This document shows, in pieces, positions 1,914-45,426 of a stretch of 45,426 bases of DNA. Source of the stretch: Anthoceros angustus (lineage: Eukaryota; Plantae; Anthocerotophyta); contig VJWM01000350.1 in assembly GCA_010909165.1 (NCBI GenBank), forward strand, positions 1 through 45,426. Direction: 5' to 3'. The translations under genes were made by a program, and so were the position numbers. The notes beneath the pieces are model-generated. The model made no database searches, was not told the DNA's origin, and worked only from the letters and a program-made list of their open reading frames with translations. How positions within the stretch are numbered: position 1 is the first letter of the stretch; every line of letters begins with the position of its first letter.

Positions 1914-1937
1914 CGTTGCCACTGGTATGACCGCACC
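1914..1937 (-). pseudogene. 5' fragment of a 5S rRNA gene (nt 1 to ~23-30) fused to the LINE 5' end
   Basis: Minus strand reads GGTGCGGTCATACCAG(T)GGCAACG-GCCGG and then LINE sequence. The normal upstream spacer and promoter follow at 1938 onward. Confidence 0.85.
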
Positions 1938-2142
1938 ACGCTCCTTCTCCTGTTGCACATGCCATATACCTCACATTGCTTCCACCCTCCACCGCAACCT
2001 CGCCGCGTCACGGTGCCCCTCTTTTCTCGCGGGCGGTCGCAGGGATGGTGGCCCTTTTTCATGCACGACAATTACTTCCAAGTATGATTTTGTTCGGAAT
2101 ATTAGGTTTTCGTTTGAGATCAGCGGTGCCCCTCGTGGCATG

Positions 2143-2346
2143 CCTCTTGATTTACCTTGTAATATGGGAGTCCGCCATGCTTTTGTTGCACTACCTCATG
2201 GCATGCCTCTTGGATTTACCTAGCAATATGGTAGTCTGCCATGGGAATCCATCTTCTCCAAACTTGTTTGGCCTATATATTGATGAGGTGGAATGAAGTT
2301 GGATTGCGGAGTGTGCAGATCGTGGCGGATGTATCATGGCACTTGG
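2143..2346 (+). mobile_element. Spacer-embedded LINE RT fragment (present in every unit; first copy given), with an internal ~50-bp duplication
   Basis: Translates to DLPCNMGVRH / HGNPSSPNLFGLYIDEVE*SWIAECADRGGCIMAL versus LINE copy 2 DLLCNLGVRQGDPSSPNLFGLFIDELESWIAESGDPGCLLSL. Confidence 0.9.
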
Positions 2347-2374
2347 GCGAGGCCGTAGAGTGCCAAAAAAAAGG

Positions 2375-2551
2375 GGTTTGGTTTGGTTTGGTTTGGTTTG
2401 GTTTGGTTTGGTTTGGTTTGGTTTGGTTTGGTTTGGTTTGGTTTGGTTTGGTTTGGTTTGGTTTGGTTTGGTTTGGTTTGGTTTGGTTTGGTTTGGTTTG
2501 GTTTGGTTTGGTTTGGTTTGGTTTGGTTTGGTTTGGTTTGGTTTGTTTGGT
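2375..2551. repeat. (GGTTT)n microsatellite, one per unit, usually ~110-250 bp
   Basis: Directly visible pentamer run; (AAACC)n in the inverted block. Confidence 0.98.
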
Positions 2552-2558
2552 GAGCTAT

Positions 2559-2613
2559 GCCTACCTATTTGACTACCCATTTGCCTACCTTTTTGTTGTT
2601 GACTACCTATTTG
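2559..2613. repeat. 12-bp minisatellite G(C/A)CTACCTATTT, ~4 copies per unit
   Basis: gcctacctattt-gactacccattt-gcctaccttttt...gactacctatttg. Confidence 0.85.
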
Positions 2614-2621
2614 TCCTATAC

Positions 2622-3154
2622 GGTCTCCTCTCTCCCTTACCCACTAAGTCAAGACCTACAAGCAGTTTTTCGCATCGTTTCCAAGTCCGGGAAACTGTGC
2701 TTCCTCTCTATCTTCGCACCCATGTGTCTTTCAAGCCTAATGAGGATGATTACGGGTCATCTTCGTGTTGGGTCTCAGTCGATTGAGGCGATAGATGGCT
2801 ACATCCAAAGCCGCCAAAAGGAGTCCAATTTGCGATTATGCAACAAGGGTGTTGAGGCGAAGAACACTTTGTGTTCCTCTGTCCCATTCATGATGTTTAT
2901 CAATCTATTTACAGCGGTCTTCACTTTGGGGTGGGTTTTCTCTTTTCGACCCTATTATTGCGGGAGGTTGCTTGAAACAAATGTGGGAAATAAGAACGCA
3001 ACATATTCAACTTTTCAACTGCCGGATATTTGATTGTGCTTCACACTAGTTTCAAGCGAGACTCAGAATAGCGGTTAATTGTCATAATGCCCTTAGTGTA
3101 ACTCTATCAAATGAGTGCCATGACGGAAATCCGTCCTTAGTGGACTTAAATAAA
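2622..3154 (+). mobile_element. Spacer-embedded LINE 3' fragment: ORF2 C-terminus (CCHC knuckle) plus 3'UTR (every unit)
   Basis: LRVGSHRLGIE...RWLHPKP...IC.LCNKGVE.EEHFVFLCPI read across frameshifts and unit copies; collinear with the reverse complement of 37503-38025 in LINE copy 2. Confidence 0.9.
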
Positions 3155-3311
3155 GTAAATTGTCGTTGTTCTATGCAGTTGTTAGCATGCATAAAAATTG
3201 GAGACCGAAAAGGGGGAAAGAAGAGTTTGCAAAGAACTCTCTCTAGAAGAAGAAGATGAAGAAGAAGAATTTTATTTAAGTCCACTAAGGACGGATTTTT
3301 GTCATGGCACT
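3114..3311. repeat. 41-bp inverted repeat (3114-3154 / 3271-3311), 116-bp loop, in every unit
   Basis: AGTGCCATGACGGAAATCCGTCCTTAGTGGACTTAAATAAA versus TTTATTTAAGTCCACTAAGGACGGATTTTTGTCATGGCACT, 39/41 complementary. Confidence 0.95.
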
Positions 3312-3358
3312 GATCCGACACATATATAGAGAGACTAGAATGAAATTTAACTGCTATT
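3246..3358 (-). mobile_element. Short LINE 3' end with (TTC)n tail just downstream of the 5S gene (every unit)
   Basis: Matches the terminus of LINE copy 2 (37488-37585): gaagaa...ttttatttaagtccactaaggacggattttgtcatggcac.gatccga...gacta.aatgaaatttaac.gctatt. Confidence 0.85.
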
Positions 3359-3377
3359 ATGAGGCTGGCGTAGCTTA

Positions 3378-3401
3378 AATAAAAGGAATTTTTATAGAAA
3401 A
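3378..3401 (-). terminator. Pol III oligo-T terminator after 5S (every unit)
   Basis: Minus strand after GCACCC reads TTTTCTATAAAAATTCCTTTTATTT. Confidence 0.85.
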
Positions 3402-3515
3402 GGGTGCAGCACCGGACTTCCGGAGGTCACCCATCCCAGTACTGATCCGGCCCAAGGGCGCTTAACTGCGGAGTTCTGATGGGATCCGGTGTCGTTGCCC
3501 TGGTATGACCGCACC
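3402..3515 (-). rRNA. 5S rRNA gene
   Basis: Plant-type 5S sequence; homopolymer indels. Confidence 0.95.
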
Positions 3516-3948
3516 ACGCTCCTTCTCCTGTTGCACATGCCATATACCTCACATTGCTTCCACCCTCCACACCGCGCGGCCCTCGCACGTCACGGTGCCC
3601 CTCTTTTCTCGCGCGCGGGCGGTCGCAGGGATGGTGGCCCTTTTCATGCACGACAATTACTTCCAAGTATGATTTTGTTCACGGAATATTAGGTTTTCGT
3701 TTGGAGATCGGTGCCCCTCGTGGCATGCCTCTTGATTTACCTTGTAATATGGGAGTCCGCCATGCTGCTTTTGACTACCTCATGGCATGCCTCTTGGATT
3801 TACCTAGCAATATGGTGATGCCATGGAATCCATCTTCTCAAACTTGTTTGGCCTATATATTGATGAGGTGGAATGAAGTTGGATTGCGGTGTGCGGATCG
3901 TGGCGGATGTATCATGGCACTTGGGCGAGGCCGTAGAGTGCCAAAAAG

Positions 3949-4649
3949 GGTTTGGTTTGGTTTATTGGTTTGGTTTGGTTTGGTTTGGTTTAGTTTGGTT
4001 TGGTTTATTTGGTTTGGTTGGTTTAGTTTGGTTGGTTTGGTTTAGTTTGGTTTGGTTGGTTTGGTTTGGTTTGGTTTGGTTTGGTTTGGTTTGGTTTGAT
4101 TTGGTTTGGTTTGGTTTGGTTTGGTTTGGTTTGGTTTGGTTGGTTTGGTTTGGTTTAGTTTGGTTTGGTTTGGTTTGGTTTGGTTTGGTTTGGTTTGGTT
4201 GGTTTGGTTTGGTTTGGTTGGTTTGGTTTGGTTTGGTTTAGTTTGGTTTGGTTTGGTTGGTTTGGTTTGGTTTATTTGGTTTGGTGGTTTGGTTTGGTTT
4301 ATGGTTTATTTGGTTTGGTTTTGGATTGGTTTGGTTTATTTGGGGTTTGGTTTGGTTTGGTTTGGTTTGGTTTGGTTTGGTTTGGTTTATTTGGGGTTTG
4401 GTTTTGGTTTGGTTTGGTTTGGTTTGGTTTGGTTGGTTTGGTTTGGTTTGGTTTGGTTTGGTTTGGTTTGGTTTGGTTTATTTGGTTTGGTTTGGTTTAT
4501 TTGGTTTTGGATTGGTTTGGTGGTTGGTTTGGTTTATTGGAGTTTGGTTTTGGGTTTGGTTTGGTTTGGTTTGGTTTGGTTTGGTTTGGTTTTGGGTTTG
4601 GTTTGGTTTGGTTTGGTTTGGTTTGGTTTTGGGTTTGGTTTGGTTTGGT
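3949..4649. repeat. Expanded (GGTTT)n tract, ~700 bp
   Basis: Makes this unit ~2.07 kb. Confidence 0.9.
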
Positions 4650-8762: not shown

Positions 8763-10223
8763 ACGCTCCTTCTCCTGTTGCACATGCCATATACCTCACA
8801 CATTGCTTCCACCCTCCACCGCGCGGCCCTCGCACGTCACGGTGCCCCTCTTTTCTCGCGCGGGCGGTCGCAGGATGGTGGCCCTTTTCATGCACGACAA
8901 TTACTTCCAAGTATGATTTTGTTCATGGAATATTAGGTTTTCGTTTGGAGATCGGTGCCCCTCGTGGCATGCCTCTTGATTACCTTGTAATATGGGAGTC
9001 CGCCATGCTGCTTTTGACTGCACTACCTCATGGCATGCCTCTTGGATTTACCTAGCAATATGGTAGTGCCATGGAATCCATCTTCTCCAAACTTGTTTGG
9101 CCTATATATTGATGAGGTGGAATGAAGTTGGATTGGAGTGTGCGGATCGTGGCGGATGTATCATGGCACTTGGCGAGGCCGTAGAGTGCCAAAAAGGGTT
9201 TAGTTTGGTTTAGTTTGGTTTGGTTTGGTTTAGTTTGGTTTGGTTTGGTTTGGTTTGGTTTGGTTTGGTTTGGTTTGTTTGGTTTGGTTTAGTTTGGTTT
9301 GGTTTGGTTTGGTTTGGTTTAGTTTGGTTTATTTGGTTTGGTTTGGTTTGGTTTGGTTTGGTTTGGTTTGGTTTGGTTTGGTTTGGTGAGCTATGCCTAC
9401 CTATTTGACTACCTATTTGCCTACCTTTTTGTTGTTGACTACCTATTTGTCCTATACGGTCTCCTCTCTCCCTTACCCACTGTCAAGACCTACAAGCAGT
9501 TTTTCGCATCGTTTCCAAGTCCGGGAAACTGTGCTTCCTCTATCTTCGCACCCATGTGTCTTTCAAGCCTAATGAGGATGATTACGGTCATCTTCGTGTT
9601 GGGTCTCAAATCTCGGGATTGAGGCGATAGATGGCTACATCCAAAGCCGAAAAGGAGTCAATTTGCAGTTATGCAACAAGGGTGTTGAGGCGAAGAACAC
9701 TTTGTGTTCCTCTGTCCCATTCATGATGTTTATCAATCTATTTACGACTTGGTCTTCACTTTGGGGTGGGTTTTCTCTTTTCGACCCTATTATTGCGGAG
9801 GTTGCTTGAAACAAATGTGGGAAATAAGAGCAACATATTCAACTTTTCAACTGCCGGATATTTGATTGTGCTTCACAGACTAGTTTCAAGCGAGACTCGA
9901 ATAGCGGTTAATTGTCATAATGCCCTTAGTGTAACTCTATCAAATGAGTGCCATGACGGAAATCCGTCCTTAGTGGACTTAAATAAAGTAAATTGTCGTT
10001 GTTCTATGCGGTTGTTAGCATGCATAAAATTGGAGACCGAAAAGGGGAAAGAAGAGTTTGCAAAGAACTCTCTCTAGAAGAAGAAGAAGAAGAATTTTAT
10101 TTAAGTCCACTAAGGACGGATTTTGTCATGGCACTGATCCGACACATATATAGAGACTAGAATGAAATTTAACTGCTATTATGAGGCTGGCGTAGCTTAA
10201 ATAAAAGGAATTTTTATAGAAAA

Positions 10224-10340
10224 GGGTGCAGCACCGGGACTTCCCGGGAGGTCACCCATCCCAGTACTGATCCGGCCCAAGGGCGCTTAACTGCGGAGTT
10301 CTGATGGGATCCGGTGTCGTTGCCCTGGTATGACCGCACC
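10224..10340 (-). rRNA. 5S rRNA gene (clean 117-nt copy)
   Basis: GGTGCGGTCATACCAGGGCAACGACACCGGATCCCATCAGAACTCCGCAGTTAAGCGCCCTTGGGCCGGATCAGTACTGGGATGGGTGACCTCCCGGGAAGTCCCGGTGCTGCACCC; A-box-like AGTTAAGCG and C-box GGATGGGTGACC present. Confidence 0.98.
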
Positions 10341-11827
10341 ACGCTCCTTCTCCTGTTGCACATGCCATATACCTCACACATTGCTTCCACCCTCCACACC
10401 GCGCGCGGCCCCTCGCACGTCACGGTGCCCCTCTTTTCTCGCGCGGGCGGTCGCAGGGGATGGTGGCCCTTTTTCATGCACGACAATTACTTCCAAGTAT
10501 GATTTTGTTCACTGGAATATTAGGTTTTTCGTTTGGAGATCAGCGGTGCCCCTCGTGGCATGCCTCTTCGATTTACCTTGTAATATGGGAGTCCGCCATG
10601 CTGCTTTTGACTGCACTACCTCATGGCATGCCTCTTGGATTTACCTAGCAATATGGTAGTCTGCCATGGGAATCCATCTTCTCCAAACTTGTTTGGCCTA
10701 TATATTGATGAGGTGGAATGAAGTTGGATTGCGGTGTGCGGATCGTGGCGGATGTATCATGGCACTTGGGCGAGGCCGTAGAGTGCCAAAAAGGGTTTAG
10801 TTTGGTTTGGTTTGGTTTGTTTGGTTTGGTTTGGTTTGGTTTGGTTTGGTTTAGTTTGGTTTATTTGGTTTGGTTTGGTTTGGTTTGGTTTGGTTTGGTT
10901 GGTTTGGTTTGGTTTGGTTTGGTTGGTTTATTTGGTTTGGTTTGGTTTGGTTTGGTTTGGTTTGGTTTGGTTTGGTTTGGTTTGGTTTGGTTTGGTGAGC
11001 TATGCCTACCTATTTGACTACCTATTTGCCTACCTTTTTGTTGTTGACTACCTATTTGTCCTATACAGTCTCCTCTCTCCCTTACCCACTAAGTCAAGAC
11101 CTACAAGCAGTTTTTCGCATCGTTTCCAAGTCCGGGAAACTGTGCTTCCTCTATCTTAGCACCCATGTGTCTTTCAAGCCTAATGAGGATGATTACGGGT
11201 CATCTTCGTGTTGGGTCTCACCGTCTCGGGATTGAGGCGATAGATGGCTACATCCAAAGCCGCAAAGGAGTCAATTTGCAGTTATGCAACAAGGGTGTTG
11301 AGGGAAGAACACTTTGTGTTCCTCTCCCATTCATGATGTTTATCAATCTATTTACGACTTGGTCTTCACTTTGGGGTGGGTTTTCTCTTTTCGACCCTAT
11401 TATTGCGGAGGTTGCTTGAAACAAATGTGGGAAATAAGAGCAACATATTCAACTTTTCAACTGCGGATATTTGATTGTGCTTCACACTAGTTTCAAGCGA
11501 GACTCGAATAGCGGTTAATTGTCATAATGCCCTTAGTGTAACTCTATCAAATGAGTGCCATGGAAATCCGTCCTTAGTGGACTTAAATAAAGTAAATTGT
11601 CGTTGTTCTATGCGGTTGTTAGCATGCATAAAATTGGAGACCGAAAAGGGGAAAGAAGAGTTTGCAAAGAACTCTCTAGAAGAAGAAGAAGAAGAATTTT
11701 ATTTAAGTCCACTAAGGACGGATTTTGTCATGGCACTGATCCGACACATATATAGAGAGACTAGAATGAAATTTAACTGCTATTATGAGGCTGGCGTAGC
11801 TTAAATAAAAGGAATTTTTATAGAAAA

Positions 11828-12371: not shown

Positions 12372-13079
12372 GGTTTAGTTTGGTTTGGTTTGGTTTGGTT
12401 TAGTTTGGTTTGGTTTGGTTTGGTTTGGTTTATTTGGTTTGGTTTGGTTTGGTTTGGTTTGGTTTGGTTTAGTTTGGTTGGTTTGGTTTGGTTTGGTTTG
12501 GTTTGGTTGGTTTGGTTTGGTTTGGTTTGGTTTGGTTTGGTTTGGTTTGGTTTAGTTTGGTTTTGGTTTGGTTTGGTTGGTTTGGTTTGGTTTGGTTTGG
12601 TTTGGTTTGGTTTGGTTTGGTTTGGTTTGGTTTGGTTTGGTTTGGTTTATTTGGTTTGGTTTGGTTTATTTGGTTTGGTTTGGTTTGGTTTGGTTTGGTT
12701 TTGGAGTTTGGTTTGGTTGGTTTGGTTGGTTTGGTTTGGTTTATTTGGTTTGGTTTGGTTTGGTTTGGTTTGGTTTGGTTTAGTTTGGTTTGGTTTAGTT
12801 TGGTTTGGTTTGGTTTGGTTTGGTTTAGTTTGGTTGGTTTGGTTTGGTTTGGTTTTGGGTTTGGTTTGGTTTGGTTTGGTTTGGTTTGGTTTGGTTTATT
12901 TGGTTTTGGGGGGTTTGGTTTTGGATTTGGTTTGGTTTGGTTTGGTTTATTTGGTTTGGTTTGGTTTGGTTTGGTTTGGTTTGGTTTGGTTTGGTTTTGG
13001 AGTTTGGTTGGTTTGGTTTTTTGGTTTGGTTTGGTTTTGGGGTTTGGTTTTGGAGTTTGGTTTTGGGGTTTGGTTTGGT
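12372..13079. repeat. Expanded (GGTTT)n tract, ~700 bp
   Basis: Makes this unit ~2.09 kb. Confidence 0.9.
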
Positions 13080-23402: not shown

Positions 23403-23500
23403 GTGCGACAGGACTTCCGGAGGTCACCCATCCGATCTTGATCCGGCCCAAGGCGCTTAACTGCGGAGTTCGATGGAAGAAGAAGAATTTTTATAACCGC
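23403..23500 (-). pseudogene. 5S copy with nt ~13-33 replaced by a LINE-tail-like (TTC)n piece
   Basis: gagttcgatgg|aagaagaagaatttt|tataaccgc. Confidence 0.7.
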
Positions 23501-24945
23501 TGCTCCTTCTCCTGCACATGCCATATACCTCACATTGCTTCCACCTCCACCGCGGCCCTCGCACGTCACGGTGCCCCTCTTTTCTCGCGCGGGCGGTCGC
23601 AGGGATGGTGGCCTTTTCATGCACGACAATTACTTCCAAGTATGATTTTGTTCACGGAATATTAGGTTTTCGTTTGGAGATCGGTGGTGCCCCTCGTGGC
23701 ATGCCTCTTGATTACCTTGTAATATGGGAGTCCGCCATGCTGCTTTTGCACTACCTCATGGCATGCCTCTTGGATTTACCTAGCAATATGGTAGTGCCAT
23801 GGAATCCATCTTCTCAAACTTGTTTGGCCTATATATTGATGAGGTGGAATGAAGTTGGATTGCGAGTGTGCGGATCGTGGCGGATGTATCATGGCACTTG
23901 GGCGAGGCCGTAGAGTGCCAAAAAGGTTTAGTTTGGTTTGGTTTGGTTTGGTTTGGTTTAGTTTGGTTTGGTTTGGTTTAGTTTGGTTTGGTTTGGTTTA
24001 GTTTGGTTTGGTTTGGTTTGGTTGGTTTGGTTTAGTTTGGTTTGGTTTGGTTTGGTTTGGTTTGGTTTGGTTTGGTTTGGTTTGGTTTGGTTTAGTTTGG
24101 TTTGGTTTGGTGAGCTATGCCTACCTATTTGACTACCTATTTGCCTACCTTTTTGTTGACTACCTATTTGTCCTATACGGTCTCCTCTCTCTCCCTTACC
24201 CACTGTCAAGACCTACAAGCAGTTTTTTCGCATCGTTTCCAAGTCCGGGAAACCTGCTTCCTCTCTATCTTCGCACCCATGTGTCTTTCAAGCCTAATGA
24301 GGATGATTACGGGTCATCTTCGTGTTGGGTCTCACCGTCTCGGGATTGAGGCGATAGATGGCTACATCAAAGCCGAAAAGGAGTCAATTTGCATTATGCA
24401 ACAAGGGTGTTGAGGCAAGAACACTTTGTGTTCCTCCCATTCATGATGTTTATCAATCTATTTACGACTTGGTCTTCACTTTGGGGTGGGTTTTCTCTTT
24501 TCGACCCTATTATTGCGGAGGTTGCTTGAAACAAATGTGGGAAATAAGAGCAACATATTCAACTTTTCAACTGCGGATATTTGATTGTGCTTCACACTAG
24601 TTTCAAGCGAGACTCGAATAGCGGTTAATTGTCATAATGCCCTTAGTGTAACTCTATCAAATGAGTGCCATGGCGGAAATCCGTCCTTAGTGGACTTAAA
24701 TAAAGTAAATTATCGTTGTTCTATGCGGTTGTTAGCATGCATAAAATTGGAGACCGAAAAGGGGAAAGAAGAGTTTGCAAAGAACTCTCTCTAGAAGAAG
24801 AAGAAGAAGAAGAATTTTATTTAAGTCCACTAAGGACGGATTTTTGTCATGGCACTGATCCGACACATATAGAGAGACTAGAATGAAATTTAACTGCTAT
24901 TATGAGGCTGGCGTAGCTTAAATAAAAGGAATTTTTATAGAAAAA

Positions 24946-25053: not shown

Positions 25054-26539
25054 ACGCTCCTTCTCCTGTTGCACATGCCATATACCTCACACATTGCTTC
25101 CACCCTCCACCGCGCGCGGCCCTCGCACGTCACGGTGCCCCTCTTTTCTCGCGCGGGCGGTCGCAGGATGGTGGCCCTTTTCATGCACGACAATTACTTC
25201 CAAGTATGATTTTGTTCAACTGGAATATTAGGTTTTTGGTTTTGGAGATCAGCGGTGCCCCTCGTGGCATGCCTCTTGATTTACCTTGTAATATGGGAGT
25301 CCGCCATGCTGCTTTTGACTGCACTACCTCATGGCATGCCTCTTGGATTTACCTAGCAATATGGTAGTCGCCATGGGAATCCATCTTCTCCAAACTTGTT
25401 TGGCCTATATATTGATGAGGTGGAATGAAGTTGGATTGCGGTGTGCGGATCGTGGCGGATGTATCATGGCACTTGGCGAGGCCGTAGAGTGCCAAAAAGG
25501 GGTTTAGTTTAGTTTAGTTTGGTTTGGTTTGGTTTATTTGGTTTGGTTTGGTTTGGTTTGGTTTGGTTTATTTGGTTTGGTTGGTTTGGTTTGGTTTGGT
25601 TTGGTTTGGTTTGGTTTGGTTTGGTTTGGTTGGTTTGGTTTGGTTTGGTTTGGTTTGGTTTGGTTTGGTTTGGTTTGGTTTGGTTTGGTTTGGTTTGGTT
25701 TGGTGAGCTATGCCTACCTATTTGACTACCTATTTGCCTACCTTTTTGTTGTTGACTACCTATTTGTCCTATACGGTCTCCTCTCTCCTTACCCACTAAG
25801 TCAAGACCTACAAGCAGTTTTTCGCATCGTTTCCAAGTCCGGGAAACTGTGCTTCCTCTATCTTAGCACCCATGTGTCTTTCAAGCCTAATGAGGATGAT
25901 TACGGGTCATCTTAGTGTTGGGTCTCACCGTCTCGGGATTGAGGCGATAGATGGCTACATCCAAAGCCGACAAAAGGAGTCAATTTGCAGTTATGCAACA
26001 AGGGTGTTGAGGCAAGAACACTTTGTGTTCCTCTGTCCCATTCATGATGTTTATCAATCTATTTACGACTTGGTCTTCACTTTGGGGTGGGTTTTCTCTT
26101 TTCGACCCTATTATTGCGGAGGTTGCTTGAAACAAATGTGGAAATAAGAGCAACATATTCAACTTTTCAACTGCGGATATTTGATTGTGCTTCACACTAG
26201 TTTCAAGCGAGACTCGAATAGCGGTTAATTGTCATAATGCCCTTAGTGTAACTCTATCAAATGAGTGCCATGGCAAATCCGTCCTTAGTGGACTTAAATA
26301 AAGTAAATTGTCGTTGTTCTGCATTGTTAGCATGCATAAAATTGGAGACCGAAAAGGGGAAAGAAGAGTTTGCAAAGAACTCTCTAGAAGAAGAAGAAGA
26401 AGAAGAAGAATTTTATTTAAGTCCACTAAGGACGGATTTTGTCATGGCACCGATCCGACACATATAGAGAGACTAGAATGAAATTTAACTGCTATTATGA
26501 GGCTGGCGTAGCTTAAATAAAAGGAATTTTTATAGAAAA

Positions 26540-37407: not shown

Positions 37408-37487
37408 GGGTGCAGCACCAGGACTTCCGGAGGTCACCCATCCCGATCTTGATCCGGCCCAAGGGCGCTTAACTGCGGAGTTCATGG
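37408..37487 (-). pseudogene. 3' part of a 5S gene (nt ~34-117) directly after the LINE (TTC)n tail
   Basis: Minus strand: ...AAATAAAATTCTTCTTCTTCTT|CCAT--GAACTCCGCAGTTAAG... Confidence 0.88.
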
Positions 37488-37749
37488 AAGAAGAAGAAGA
37501 ATTTTATTTAAGTCCACTAAGGACGGATTTTGTCATGGCACCGATCCGAGATAAACAAAAGACTATAATGAAATTTAACGCTATTCACGCAGAGAATAGT
37601 CTTGTGAGGCATAATCAAATATCCGCAAGTTGAGAAGTTCAAGTTGGTTGGTCCTCATTTCATTTGTTTCAAGCAAACTCCGCAATAATAGGGTCGAAAA
37701 TTGAAAAAACCCCGAGTGAAGATCGTTGTAAATAGATTGATAAATGTAT

Positions 37750-37900
37750 GATATCTTCATATATGGGACAGGAAAACAAAGTGTTCCTCATTCTCAACAT
37801 CCTGTTGCATAACTGCATATTCGGGTCTCCTTAGGTGGCTTTGGACGAGCCATCTATCTCAACCACGAGATGGTGGGACCCACCAAGATGACCCATAATC
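37750..37900 (-). pseudogene. LINE ORF2 C-terminal CCHC zinc knuckle
   Basis: Manual translation allowing single-base indels: RWL.PKPPKETRIC.LCNR.VENEEHFVF.CPIYEDI. Confidence 0.8.
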
Positions 37901-38671
37901 ATCCTAAGCTTGAAGGACACATGGGTGCGGAGATAGAGAGGAAGCATTGGTTTCCCAGTTGGAGAGGATACGAAAAGTTGTTTGTAAGTTTCTAGCTTAG
38001 TAGGTAAGGGAGAGATAGGAGACCATCAAATAGGTAGTCAAATCAAGGCGGATGGACTTATTCGGAGGAGGGCGGAAGAGGGGTGGTGGAAGACTCTCCC
38101 ATCAAACTTCTCGGCCCAAGTAGTGAGAATTTCCAAGCATGCGCTAAAGATCTTGGCCTTCACCTTTTCATAGAGAACCATGGCATGCCTCTTGGATTTA
38201 CCTAGCAATATATACCAAGGAGGTATGAGGGAGTGGAGGTGGGGTGATTAGAATGGGCTTCTTCTAAAGAGTAAAGGCGGTATAGGAAGTTGGTTAGGCG
38301 AAATAGACCCTCAAGTTCAAGCGGGAAAGTGGCAAACTCTGCAAGAAAGATGGCAAGGGGGACAGACTTCTTACATGCAATGTGGGGCCGAAGAAAGGAC
38401 GTTTGAATCTCCTCCACCTTGCGCCAGTCATCGAGGGAGAGATAGGGTCCCCAAAACTCGGCTGCATACATAGCCAAGGAACAACAACTGTTGAAGAGCC
38501 ATTCTTGAGTGGGGATGTCCTTGATGTGCATCCTAGAGCACATCTCCGAACCCCTGGCGGATGCCACACCCTTGACAATGCGGAGAGCTTCCATCGAGTG
38601 TTGGGCCATAGAGTGCCTCAAGGTAGACATAAGATCGAACAACCTCCACAGTTCACCATTATAGAAGAACT

Positions 38672-39560
38672 TCAAATTGTCGACAGATCCCGGTTGAAAA
38701 ACATGACCTTGGTCTTCTTCAAGTTCACTTCCAAATCTCTTGCCGCGGAGAAGCGAGACAATGTGTCTAGTTGCTGTTGGAGGCCCTCAGGAGAATGGGA
38801 CAAAAGAGCAATGTCATCTGCATATAGGAGAATAGCAATATATACCAAGGAGAGGAGGCAGCCAGGGTCCCCAGACTCCGCAATCCAAGACTCCAGCTCA
38901 TCAATGAATAAGCCAAATAAGTTGGGAGAAGATGGATCTCCCTGCCGCACTCCCAAATTGCAAAGCAAATCCAAAAGGTCAAAAGCAGCATAGGGAGTGC
39001 GGATCTTGGCCTTCACCTTTTCATAGAGAACCTGTATGGCATGTAAAAGATGAGTAGGCAACCCCAACCTATGAAACCGGGCAAAGAGCTTCTCGCGGGA
39101 GATAGAGTCGAAAGCTCGCTTGAAATCAACAAAACAGACATAAACATGTCGATCGTCCCTCCGCTCGCTCTTGGCCTCCGAATAATAGCAATGAGTGTGA
39201 AAAGATTATCCCGAGTATTCCGGATGAAACCCAGCCTTGTGCTCGATCCCAGATTCTCGGCCCAAGTAGTAAGAATTTCCAAGCATGCGCTAAAGATCTT
39301 GGCGAAGATGGACTCAACCATGATATACCTGTAGTTGGGCGGGAGCTGTGGGTCACCTGTCTTGAAGATGAAATGGATGTCATTCCAACACCATGCCTCA
39401 GGAAAACCATGGACTAAAGCCTCATTGAACAAAGCAGCTAAGGGAGGGGCAATAACAGTAGGAGCTGCATAAGAGAAAAGTTCTCCAGGGATATCTGCAG
39501 GGTCAGAGGCTCTCCCAGATCTGAGTTTGTTGATAGCTGCCAGAATGAGGTCGAGGCTCT
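38672..39560 (-). pseudogene. LINE ORF2 reverse transcriptase domain, frameshifted as given
   Basis: AINKLRSGRASDPADIPGELF, IFKTGDPQLPPNYRYI, GVRQGDPSSPNLF, LLYADDIALL, LEVNLKKTKVM. Confidence 0.95.
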
Positions 39561-39836
39561 CCCGGATCCCGAGACGACAAGGGGAGCAGATTCCGGAAGA
39601 AGAGAGTTTGCACATACTTGATAAGCTCGAGAGGCCTCCAATAAGATTGTTCGATGAGTGAAACTCCTTCCAAAAAAGCAAGACCACCGGAGATTCTCGA
39701 GAAGCCTCAAGAGGCGATCGCGCTGGGAGGAAAAGAAAGCAGACTTTTTGACAGCAATGAGAGCCTTATAAGGCTTGACAATTGCCTTGTACAGCGGGGA
39801 ATGATGAGACTTGGATGGGACATTGAGAGCACGGAG

Positions 39837-40373
39837 GCACTTATGAGTATGAAAGCGGAGACGTTTGCATTCATCATCAAACCAAGGGTGGCGAGGAGCA
39901 GTGTTGGAGAGCTTGACAGGATGACAAGGTTTAGGGGGAAAGATTTTATGTGCAGAAGATAGCATGGCAGAAGTGAAAGCAGTGGCTTGTTGGGAGAAGG
40001 GAAGGCCAAGAGGAATGGCAGCCAAGGACTTTTTAGAAGAGAGGAGTATTGGGAAGCAAGACGATGGTTGAGGAAAAGTGGACTCTAGAAGACTTGTGGG
40101 ATTGGAGCAGGCACTTATGAGTATGAAAGCGGAGGCGTTTGCATTCATCATCAAACCAAGGGTGGCGAGGAGCGGTGTTGGAGAGCTTGACAGATGACAA
40201 GGTTTAGGGGAAAGATTTTATGTGAGAAGATAGCATGGCGAAGTGGCGTGGCTTGTTGGGAGAAGGGAAGGCCAAGAGGAATGGCCAAGGACTTTTTAGA
40301 AGAGAGGAGTATTGGGAAGCAAGACGATGGTTGAGGAAAAGTGGACTCTAGAAGACTTGTGGGATTGGAGCAG
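39837..40373. repeat. Tandem duplication inside LINE copy 2 (39837-40110 / 40111-40373)
   Basis: gcacttatgagtatgaaagcggag...gattggagcag occurs twice; single in LINE copy 1. Confidence 0.9.
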
Positions 40374-40713
40374 CATCGCTTGTCATAGGATATATGCCAA
40401 GAAATGAAGACATGGTCGACTCAAGAGGCTTGAAGTCGAGACCGCAATTGGTGGTGAAAAGAAAGAAAGGAAGCCTCTCCAATGACGTAATCAAGGACAG
40501 AAGTTGACCAAGGAGCATAGTGGGTAATCCTCTCGCTCCCGTGCCATTGAGGAAGTCCATTGAAAATAATAGGTTGTGCGACTCCAGTTGAGAAGAGCCA
40601 CCAAAAACATTTACAGTGCGGATCATCGGATGTCTCGAGGCCAACCTCAAGATCAAGCGAATAACTTTTGTTGGTCATCCGTTCTTACATTTGTTTCAAG
40701 CAACCTCCATAAT

Positions 40714-41470
40714 AATAGGGTCGAAAAGAGAAAAACCCACCCCAAAGTGAAGACCAAGGCGCCGTAAATAGATTGATAAACATCATGAATGGGACAGAGG
40801 AACACAAAGTGTTCTTGATCTCAACACCCTTGTTGCATAATGCAAAGGACTCCTTTTCTTTGGCTTTGGATGTAGCCATCTATCTCAATCACGACGGTGA
40901 GACCCAACGAAGATGACCGTAATCATCCTCATTAGGCTTGAAAGACACATGGGTGCGAAGATAGAGAGGAACGGGTTTCCCGGACTTGGAAACGATGCGA
41001 AAAAAGCTGCTTGTAGGTCTTGACTTAGTGGGTAAGGGAGAGAGGAGACGGTATGGGACAAATAGGTAGTCAACAACAAAAAGGTAGGCAAATAGGGTCG
41101 AAAAGAGAAAAACCCACCCCAAAGTGAAGACCAAGCTGTCGTAAATAGATTGATAAACATCATGAATGGGACAGAGGAACACAAAGTGTTCTTGATCTCA
41201 ACACCCTTGTTGCATAATGCAAATTCGACTCCTTTTCTTTGGCTTTGGATGTAGCCATCTATCGGTCAATCCCGAGACGGTGAGACCCAACACGAAGATG
41301 ACCGTAATCATCCTCATTAGGCTTGAAAGACACATGGGTGCGAAGATAGAGAGGAAGCACAGTTTCCCGGACTTGGAAACGATGCGAAAAACTGCTTGTA
41401 GGTCTTGACTTAGTGGGTAAGGGAGAGACCGTATGGGACAAATGGGTAGTCAACAACAAAAAGGTAGGCA
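40714..41470. repeat. ~380-bp tandem duplication of spacer (40714-41090 / 41091-41470)
   Basis: Junction ggtaggca|aatagggtcg uses AATAGG microhomology. Confidence 0.85.
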
Positions 41471-42142
41471 AATAGGTAGTCAAATAGGTGGGCATAGCTC
41501 ACCAAACCAAACCAAACCAAACCAAACCAAACCAAACCAAACCAAACCAAACCAAACCAAACCAAACCAAACAAACCAAACCAAACCAAACCAAACCAAA
41601 CCAAACCAAACCAAACCAAACCAAACCAAACCAAACCAAACCAAACCAAACCAAACCAAACCAAACCAAACCAAACCAAACCAAACCAAACCAAACCAAA
41701 CCAAACCAAACCAAACAAACCAAACCAAACCAAACCCTTTTTTGGCACTCTCGGCCTCGCCCAAGTGCCATGATACATCCGCCACGATACACTCTCCAAT
41801 CAACTTCATTCCACCTCATCAATATATAGGCCAAACAAGTTTGAGAAGATGGATTCCATGGCGGACTCCCATATTACAAGGTAAATCCAAGAGGCATGCC
41901 ATGAGGTAGTGCAGTCAAAAGCAGCATGGCGGACTCCCATATTACAAGGTAAATCCAAGAGGCATGCCACGAGGGCACCGATCTCCAAACGAAAACCTAA
42001 TATTCCGGTGAACAAAATCATACTTGGAAGTAATTGTCGTGCATGAAAAGGGCCACCATCCTGCGACCGCCCGCGCGAGAAAAGAGGGCACCGTGACGTG
42101 CGAGGGGCCGCGCGCGGTGTGGAGGGTGGAAGCAATGTGAGG

Positions 42143-42147
42143 TATAT
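42143..42147 (+). promoter_or_regulatory. TATA-like element ~-31 to -27 upstream of 5S (every unit)
   Basis: GAGGTATATGGC at the position known for plant 5S upstream TATA-like boxes. Confidence 0.6.
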
Positions 42148-42173
42148 GGCATGTGCAACAGGAGAAGGAGCGT

Positions 42174-42290
42174 GGTGCGGTCATACCAGGGCAACGACAC
42201 CGGATCCCATCAGAACTCCGCAGTTAAGCGCCCTTGGGCCGGATCAGTACTGGGATGGGTGACCTCCCGGGAAGTCCCGGTGCTGCACCC
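42174..42290 (+). rRNA. 5S rRNA gene (clean 117-nt copy)
   Basis: Same sequence as 10224-10340; followed by TTTTT. Confidence 0.98.
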
Positions 42291-44850: not shown

Positions 44851-45426
44851 AAACCAAAAAAAAATAAAAGGAATTTTTATTTAAGTCCACTAAGGACGGA
44901 TTTTGTCATGGCACTGATCCGACACATATAGAGACTAGAATGAAATTTAAGCTATTATGAGGCTGGCGTAGCTTAAATAAAAGGAATTTTTATTTAAGTC
45001 CACTAAGGACGGATTTTGTCATGGCACTTGGGCGAGGCCGCGCGCGGCCCTCGCACGTCACGGTGCCCCTCGTGGCATGCCTCTTGGATTTACCTTGTAA
45101 TATGGGAGTCCGCCATGCTGCTTTTGACTGCACTACCTCATGGCATGCCTCTTGGATTTACCTAGCAATATGGTAGTGCCATGACAAAATCCGTCCTTAG
45201 TGGACTTAAATAAAGTAAATTGTCGTGCATGAAAAGGGCCACCATCCTGCGACCGCCGCGCGAGAAAAGAGGGGCACCGTGACGTGCGAGGCCGTAGAGT
45301 GCCAAAAAAGGGGTTTGGTTGGTTTGGTGGTTTGGTGGTTTGGTGAGCTATGCCTACCTATTTGCCTACCTATTTGCCTACCTATTTGCCTACCTATTTG
45401 CCTACCTATTTGCCTACCTATTTGCC
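44851..45426. other. Patchwork of short unit fragments in both orientations; probable consensus or correction artefact
   Basis: Pieces joined at shared short k-mers (catggcac, ttttattt, gtgccatga); ends in a looping (GCCTACCTATTT)n. Confidence 0.75.

Follow-up and report, generated by a model that had tools for sequence, protein, structure and literature searches.

Insertions of transposable elements into 5S rRNA gene spacers are described as "relatively frequent" in a 2024 review covering Allium, cereals, banana and fish (PMC10946416). Ty1/copia fragments in banana, a TE-bearing 5S family in Allium schoenoprasum, and LINEs and SINEs in fish all form part of the 5S spacer (PMC10946416). Mutsu, a LINE specific to the 5S gene, occurs in Hydra and zebrafish (Kojima & Fujiwara 2004; Locati et al. 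2017, PMC5340908), and the 5S arrays of Tribolium freemani combine a satellite DNA spacer with regular interruption by Jockey-like LINEs (PMC11202950). Our analysis of a hornwort 5S array, contained in a 45,426-bp stretch of DNA (hereafter the window), indicates that its spacer was very probably enlarged by at least two retrotransposition events of a single LINE family and then homogenised. No paper describing hornwort 5S spacers built from a LINE was found in our literature search.

The window contains 22 5S rRNA genes (Rfam), and self-comparison resolved a tandem 5S rDNA array with a unit of ~1.59 kb. The genes lie on the minus strand from 1927 to 37485, partial spacer pieces in inverted orientation occupy 40687-42184, and units with plus-strand 5S genes follow from 42173 onward. 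Every unit carries a (GGTTT)n array of 23-140 copies (TRF), and units vary in length mainly through this microsatellite, with ~140 copies in two units (3949-4649 and 12372-13079) versus 23-50 elsewhere. The 5S copies are 110-119 nt long and score 45-106 bits with Rfam. Many of the differences among them, for example between 3401-3516 and 10223-10341, concern homopolymer length (CTCCGGAAGTCCGG versus CTCCCGGGAAGTCCCGG), and are probably long-read assembly errors and not signs of pseudogenes. The spacer at 1927-3400 (1474 bp), next to the 5S gene at 3401-3516 (minus strand; Rfam RF00001, 99 bits), served as the reference.

Two LINE copies lie in the window, both on the minus strand and 85-86% identical to each other (blastn). 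Copy 1 (1-1816), identified by its sequence, its alignment to copy 2 and an endonuclease domain (Exo_endo_phos, E 3e-9), is the 5' part of an element that continues beyond the window; its endonuclease ORF begins ~100 bp in from the 5' terminus and is not preceded by an ORF1. Copy 2 (37486-40681), the comparison partner for the spacer, includes a reverse transcriptase (RT) domain (Pfam RVT_1, E 3e-15) and has its 3' end inside a 5S gene; its start matches position 1222 of copy 1, and it is therefore truncated at the 5' end. The LINE tail is of the (TTC)n type, found at the 3' end of copy 2 at 37489-37502. In an independent public run (X1), 60 contigs whose flanks differ terminate at 37487, which identifies this point as a true mobile-element terminus. 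In the same run the last ~44 nt of the LINE (37487-37530) are ~30 times deeper than the rest, and 69 contigs change over at 37530 to a different common sequence. Depth in X1 was rejected as proof of a multi-copy 3' region, since spacer-derived contigs may sit on conserved blocks, and on this point only the contig ends at 37487 were relied on.

Within the window, the LINE 3' region is known from copy 2 only, which is itself rearranged at 38100-38230. This stretch, between the thumb region and the C-terminal motif, is a patchwork of short duplicated RT pieces ('VLYEKVKAKI', 'FSACLEILTTWAE') that possibly arose by template switching or conversion with the spacer. All 33 of 33 bases at 38179-38211 are identical to spacer 2197-2229 in the opposite orientation (E 8e-9, blastn), a match showing that some sequence would also have moved between the spacer and copy 2, or been converted. 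The region between the endonuclease and RT domains contains, at 39835-40373, a tandem duplication of 263 bp (2.0 copies, 95% matches). At 40681-40687 copy 2, truncated at its 5' end, is joined to inverted spacer sequence (spacer position ~2984), with microhomology TAAGAACG; the array orientation flips exactly at this fusion, and in the adjoining DNA (40687-41096, 41091-42184) the coding part of a spacer segment described below (piece A) is present twice in tandem. This junction looks like a rearrangement or inversion associated with LINE insertion. Searches for another copy of the LINE 3' region, by exact-protein look-up and by word-based protein search, found none; the best representative, P0001, is encoded on a 1.66-kb contig from a distant relative (~70% DNA identity), with nothing similar beyond the thumb region. 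A LINE-like stretch at 44875-44956 was considered as a second 3' copy and rejected as merely scrambled spacer.

Alignment of copy 2 with the reference spacer (blastn) revealed three LINE-derived pieces. An RT-domain fragment at 2206-2326 (..GNPSSPNLFGLYIDEVE..; also found by tblastn) matches copy 2 at 38978-38861 with 76.9% identity (E 1e-21), and piece A, at 2599-3154, matches 38041-37503 with 75.0% identity over 581 columns (E 1.5e-96); both read in LINE sense on the plus strand, antisense to the 5S gene. The third, A', matches 37487-37585 over spacer 3255-3358 with 87.5% identity (E 1e-25), with the LINE on the minus strand, in the 5S direction. Dinucleotide-shuffled spacers (n = 100) gave at best 29 bits, against 334, 121 and 91.5 bits for the real pieces. 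Altogether ~853 of the 1474 spacer bases align strictly to copy 2, or ~900 with a 12-mer array included, which is ~60% of the spacer. An earlier note on this DNA had put the LINE-aligned part of 2143-3358 at about 850 of ~1450 spacer bases, in close agreement, and the RT fragment, the C-terminal/3'UTR fragment and the second short 3' end that it had named were all recovered by blastn, tblastn and profile searches. The BLASTN and TBLASTX comparisons that it had proposed yielded a significant collinear chain, the same in both and far above shuffles. The similarity extends beyond the RT motifs into the non-coding 3'UTR (73-81% to copy 2 at 2921-3154; 86-92% for A', within the 85-86% spread between copies 1 and 2), and by this DNA similarity the spacer pieces belong to the same family as the two LINE copies; the older piece may come from an earlier subfamily.

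The reference spacer begins with the 5S upstream flank (1927-2136, minus strand), which has no alignment to copy 1, copy 2 or 5S above shuffles. At 2143-2205 (plus strand) the beginning of the RT fragment is repeated in tandem, as supported by a local alignment of 2143-2177 to copy 2 at 38978-38942 whose score was reached by 0 of 200 shuffles, and by a direct repeat of 2149-2179 and 2213-2243 (87%, 64-bp spacing). The RT fragment and piece A are collinear, and 819 bp of LINE (38860-38042) are missing between them. In their place the spacer has 272 bp, made up of 48 unassigned bases with an A-run at the end (2327-2374), a (GGTTT)35 microsatellite (2375-2551, plus strand; TRF) and a 12-mer repeat (TGCCTACCTATT-like; 2552-2598, plus strand). 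The (GGTTT)n sequence is absent from both LINE copies and has no resemblance to 5S. The 12-mer motif is present once in copy 2, at ~38043-38026, in an alignment whose score is reached by 3 of 200 shuffles, and the repeat is read as an expanded LINE-internal motif. The earlier suggestion that (GGTTT)n and the 12-mer replaced this part of the LINE is thus borne out as to the loss and the substitution, and needs correction for the 12-mer, which is itself an expansion of LINE sequence.

Piece A opens with a decayed remnant of the ORF2 C-terminus (2599-2920, plus strand; RVGSHRLGIE ... EHFVFLCPIHDVY), collinear with copy 2 at 38041-37700 and recognised by profile, and continues as a LINE 3'UTR remnant (2921-3154, plus strand; ...GGACTTAAATAAA) aligned to 37700-37503. 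It stops exactly at the LINE body/tail boundary, and 37 of its last 40 nt are identical to copy 2. An unassigned stretch (3155-3245) separates the two LINE 3' ends. Beyond it, on the minus strand, are the (TTC)n tail of the young stub A' (3246-3269; read directly, and of the same type as the tail of copy 2), the stub itself, a heavily 5'-truncated LINE 3' end (3270-3358), and the 5S downstream flank with T-runs (3359-3400; read directly, and identical in 17 aligned units). A' consists of the last ~100 nt of the LINE plus the tail, which is retained in A' and of which none is left on A; an inverted repeat of 99 nt and 76% identity links A' to the end of A (3056-3154 and 3271-3369). No score above shuffles was obtained for 1927-2136, 2327-2374, 3155-3229 and 3359-3400 against LINE and 5S sequence, and a LINE origin of these parts was rejected because their scores fall within those of the shuffles. 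Once the LINE pieces and microsatellites are removed, 391 bp of spacer are left. A spacer of ~390 bp is usual among plant 5S units.

The composite structure is repeated throughout the array. The RT fragment, piece A and A' were found 24, 26 and 25 times, respectively: once per unit, at the same positions, and in both orientation blocks. Their identity to copy 2 is uniform over the units (76-82% for the RT fragment, 74-77% for A, 86-92% for A'), and in the alignment of 17 complete units the inter-unit substitution identity is 0.96-0.99 (~98%) in LINE-derived and other spacer parts alike, figures that are rough in their finer detail because the assembly has many homopolymer-type indels. Such indels make up most of the BLAST-level differences between units, and look like long-read errors. 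Since the pieces are in all units at the same places, and the units are ~98% alike as compared with 75-92% to the LINE, the insertions, the 819-bp deletion and the duplication would predate homogenisation. We infer that homogenisation was the mechanism by which the composite unit spread. The spread through the array claimed in the earlier note is supported by these data, in which 24-26 units have the same pieces at the same positions. In the independent run X1, the part of the spacer comprising A' and the downstream region was also at high depth. The last unit of the window (44859-45426) is scrambled, with pieces joined in new order at short shared words such as CATGGCAC; it contains two A'-like 3' ends, 5S-upstream pieces, the motif of the RT duplicate and a 12-mer array of six perfect copies.

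Protein-level comparisons bear on the direction of transfer. The thumb-region ORF of copy 2 retrieved 91 LINE-type relatives from other organisms (HMMER, 1.8 billion representative proteins). A dozen of these unrelated proteins match spacer 2216-2365 through their RT motif (tblastn), and P0054, P0004, P0006, P0009 and P0079 match the RT piece with E values of 2e-5 to 1e-3 (tblastn). The C-terminus of P0018 aligns with copy 2 at 38019-37711 (E 4e-5), including the "SSHxLxxExGR ... CxxC ... EEHFxxxCPxY" region. A profile built from the C-terminal region of five unrelated LINE proteins was compared with translations of piece A in which stops were read as X, and in many units it matched the sense frames, with a top score of 19.1 bits (E 4e-5), against at best 7.6 bits in shuffled DNA (540 frame translations) and 6.1 in antisense. 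The unit at 25752, for example, translates as "RMITGHLSVGSHRLGIEA...EHFVFLCPIHDVYQSIY". The motif 'EEHFVFLCP' is kept in the spacer and has decayed to 'EEHFVFLS' in copy 2, and this retention of Cys-Pro implies that the spacer descends from a once-functional relative, not from copy 2. At the level of sequence comparison, these results show that the common sequence is LINE coding sequence and that transfer ran from the LINE to the spacer.

The reverse course, in which the common 550 bp would be spacer DNA gained by copy 2 through 3' transduction, template switching or recombination, is very improbable. Copy 2 is indeed rearranged beside the common region, where the patchwork of RT pieces lies, holds a 33-bp stretch identical to the spacer, and is joined at its 5' end to inverted spacer DNA, as such a course might leave it. 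However, the common region encodes an ORF2 C-terminal motif that is present in unrelated LINEs, is spaced from the thumb region as expected, and terminates in the stem-loop of the family and a (TTC)n tail at the 5S target site, and the RT piece is plainly coding-derived. Transduction predicts spacer in the 5S direction, whereas piece A is antisense to 5S, and the LINE 3' end has 60 different genomic flanks in the independent run. Also to be weighed is the birth of the array itself from a single 5S gene that stood among LINE debris, or was moved there by the LINE, and was then amplified, so that the pieces would be founder sequence. Amplification from one founder also predicts the identical architecture of all units, and the LINE family targets 5S genes; moreover, hornworts are reported to have 5S genes separate from 45S, unlike other bryophytes, which would count in favour of such a birth. 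We nevertheless regard it as unlikely, given that the non-LINE remainder (391 bp plus the gene) resembles a normal small plant 5S unit, that the LINE pieces have no flanking 5S half-gene remnants, and that homogenisation of an existing array accounts for the same data.

Entry of LINE copies into an existing array, the reading that we prefer, would have started from an ordinary short plant-type 5S spacer, enlarged about threefold by LINE events, with microsatellite growth adding more. In an older event (~25% diverged), a copy 5'-truncated inside the RT domain would have inserted antisense to 5S; its start within the RT domain and its end at the body/tail boundary amount to 5' truncation with a retained 3' end. 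This copy would then have lost ~820 bp internally, where (GGTTT)n and the expanded LINE 12-mer are now found. A younger event (~8-14% diverged, within the spread of the present family) would have placed a ~100-nt stub, complete with (TTC)n tail, 30-40 bp behind the 5S gene, oriented in the 5S direction and tail-to-tail with the older copy. The composite unit may subsequently have become fixed through the array by unequal crossing-over and gene conversion, and the same LINE family, now inserting at ~nt 31-34 of the 5S gene, would later have re-entered the array. The spacer pieces are dead relics without coding capacity.

The two 3' ends are present in all units and differ in divergence: A' is 86-92% like copy 2, and the overlapping end of A is ~76% like both copy 2 and A'. 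Their overlap in LINE coordinates, combined with this difference, points to two events of different age, and on these grounds we infer the order and number of the insertion events. Twin priming was rejected for the inverted A/A' pair, because its two arms cover overlapping LINE coordinates and have diverged to different degrees (76% versus 86-92%). The RT fragment and piece A could represent two insertions instead of one with an internal deletion, but they are collinear, co-oriented and equally diverged, and their economical reading on sequence grounds would be one 5'-truncated insertion followed by internal deletion. A permissive Rfam search and local alignment with shuffles detected no 5S half-gene remnants adjoining the LINE pieces, by which relics of in-gene insertions would have been recognised, and this idea was dropped. 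Inspection by eye revealed no target-site duplications flanking A' or the block from the RT fragment to A, which is weak evidence because old or rearranged copies are expected to lack them. The module formed by 5S and A' was also considered as the progenitor of the 5S-headed SINE of this genome, and rejected because A' follows the LINE and not the SINE; in run X1, contigs sharing the LINE tail leave the LINE 44 nt from its end, into sequence unlike A'.

The family is also found within the 5S genes. The tail of copy 2 joins a 5S gene at ~nt 34 (3' junction 37485/37486), and copy 1 joins 5S at ~nt 31-33 (5' junction near 1816-1830). In a third broken 5S gene, at 23476-23502, only ~25 nt of LINE tail (..AAAAATTCTTCTTCTTCCATC) stand in place of the initial ~34 nt, at the junction site of copy 2. 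With both copies and a tail-only remnant inside 5S genes, the proposal in the earlier note that the element has built and re-invaded the array is supported, the builder of the spacer and the present invader of the 5S genes being the same LINE family.

The locus provides a base-by-base case of how the spacer of a tandem array may be made, with a short unit tripled by retrotransposon insertions and then homogenised. Relics at ~25% and ~10% divergence, along with recent in-gene copies, show that the association between LINE and 5S is old and repeated, in support of the separate claim that this LINE family specialises on 5S DNA in a plant. Every unit contains ~590 nt of LINE sequence antisense to 5S transcription, and the LINE 3' end is present in each as the 99-nt inverted repeat. 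Should the array give rise to read-through or Pol IV-type transcripts, hundreds of units would be a source of antisense or hairpin small RNAs directed at the same LINE that attacks the 5S genes. That the relics serve as a defence memory, a plant analogue of a piRNA-cluster trap within the target array, is nonetheless a speculative and quite unlikely role for them. The inversions and scrambled units of the window are likely to have had as their substrates the LINE-homologous and inverted-repeat stretches that each unit carries. Annotation of this genome should mask spacer ORFs and LINE matches within 5S arrays, treating them as relics.

Compared with Mutsu, the hornwort LINE similarly lives in 5S arrays and inserts at a constant position within the 5' half of the 5S gene, with truncated 5S remnants downstream (PMC5340908). 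Mutsu differs in that its whole or partial insertions lie between gene halves and that it has two ORFs and poly(A), and the zebrafish maternal spacer, of 57 nt, is not described as LINE-built; here, the endonuclease of copy 1 is preceded by no ORF1, the element ends in (TTC)n, and relics lie inside the repeating unit. The arrays of Tribolium freemani likewise unite 5S genes, a simple repeat and a LINE in a higher-order repeating structure (PMC11202950), but their LINEs are ~5 kb, fairly intact and periodic, whereas those described here are short dead fragments in every 1.6-kb unit. The closest parallel in outcome is with the TE-derived 5S spacers, in which a transposon in the spacer has decayed and been carried array-wide, giving a longer unit and a new unit type (PMC10946416). 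In contrast to those cases, ~60% of the hornwort spacer derives from at least two events of a single LINE family, and the spacer-building family also inserts into the 5S gene, a combination for which no report from a plant was found in the literature searched. Transposon-derived 5S spacers are already known, and the specific interest of this array is that the builder of its spacer and the present invader of its genes are one and the same LINE family.
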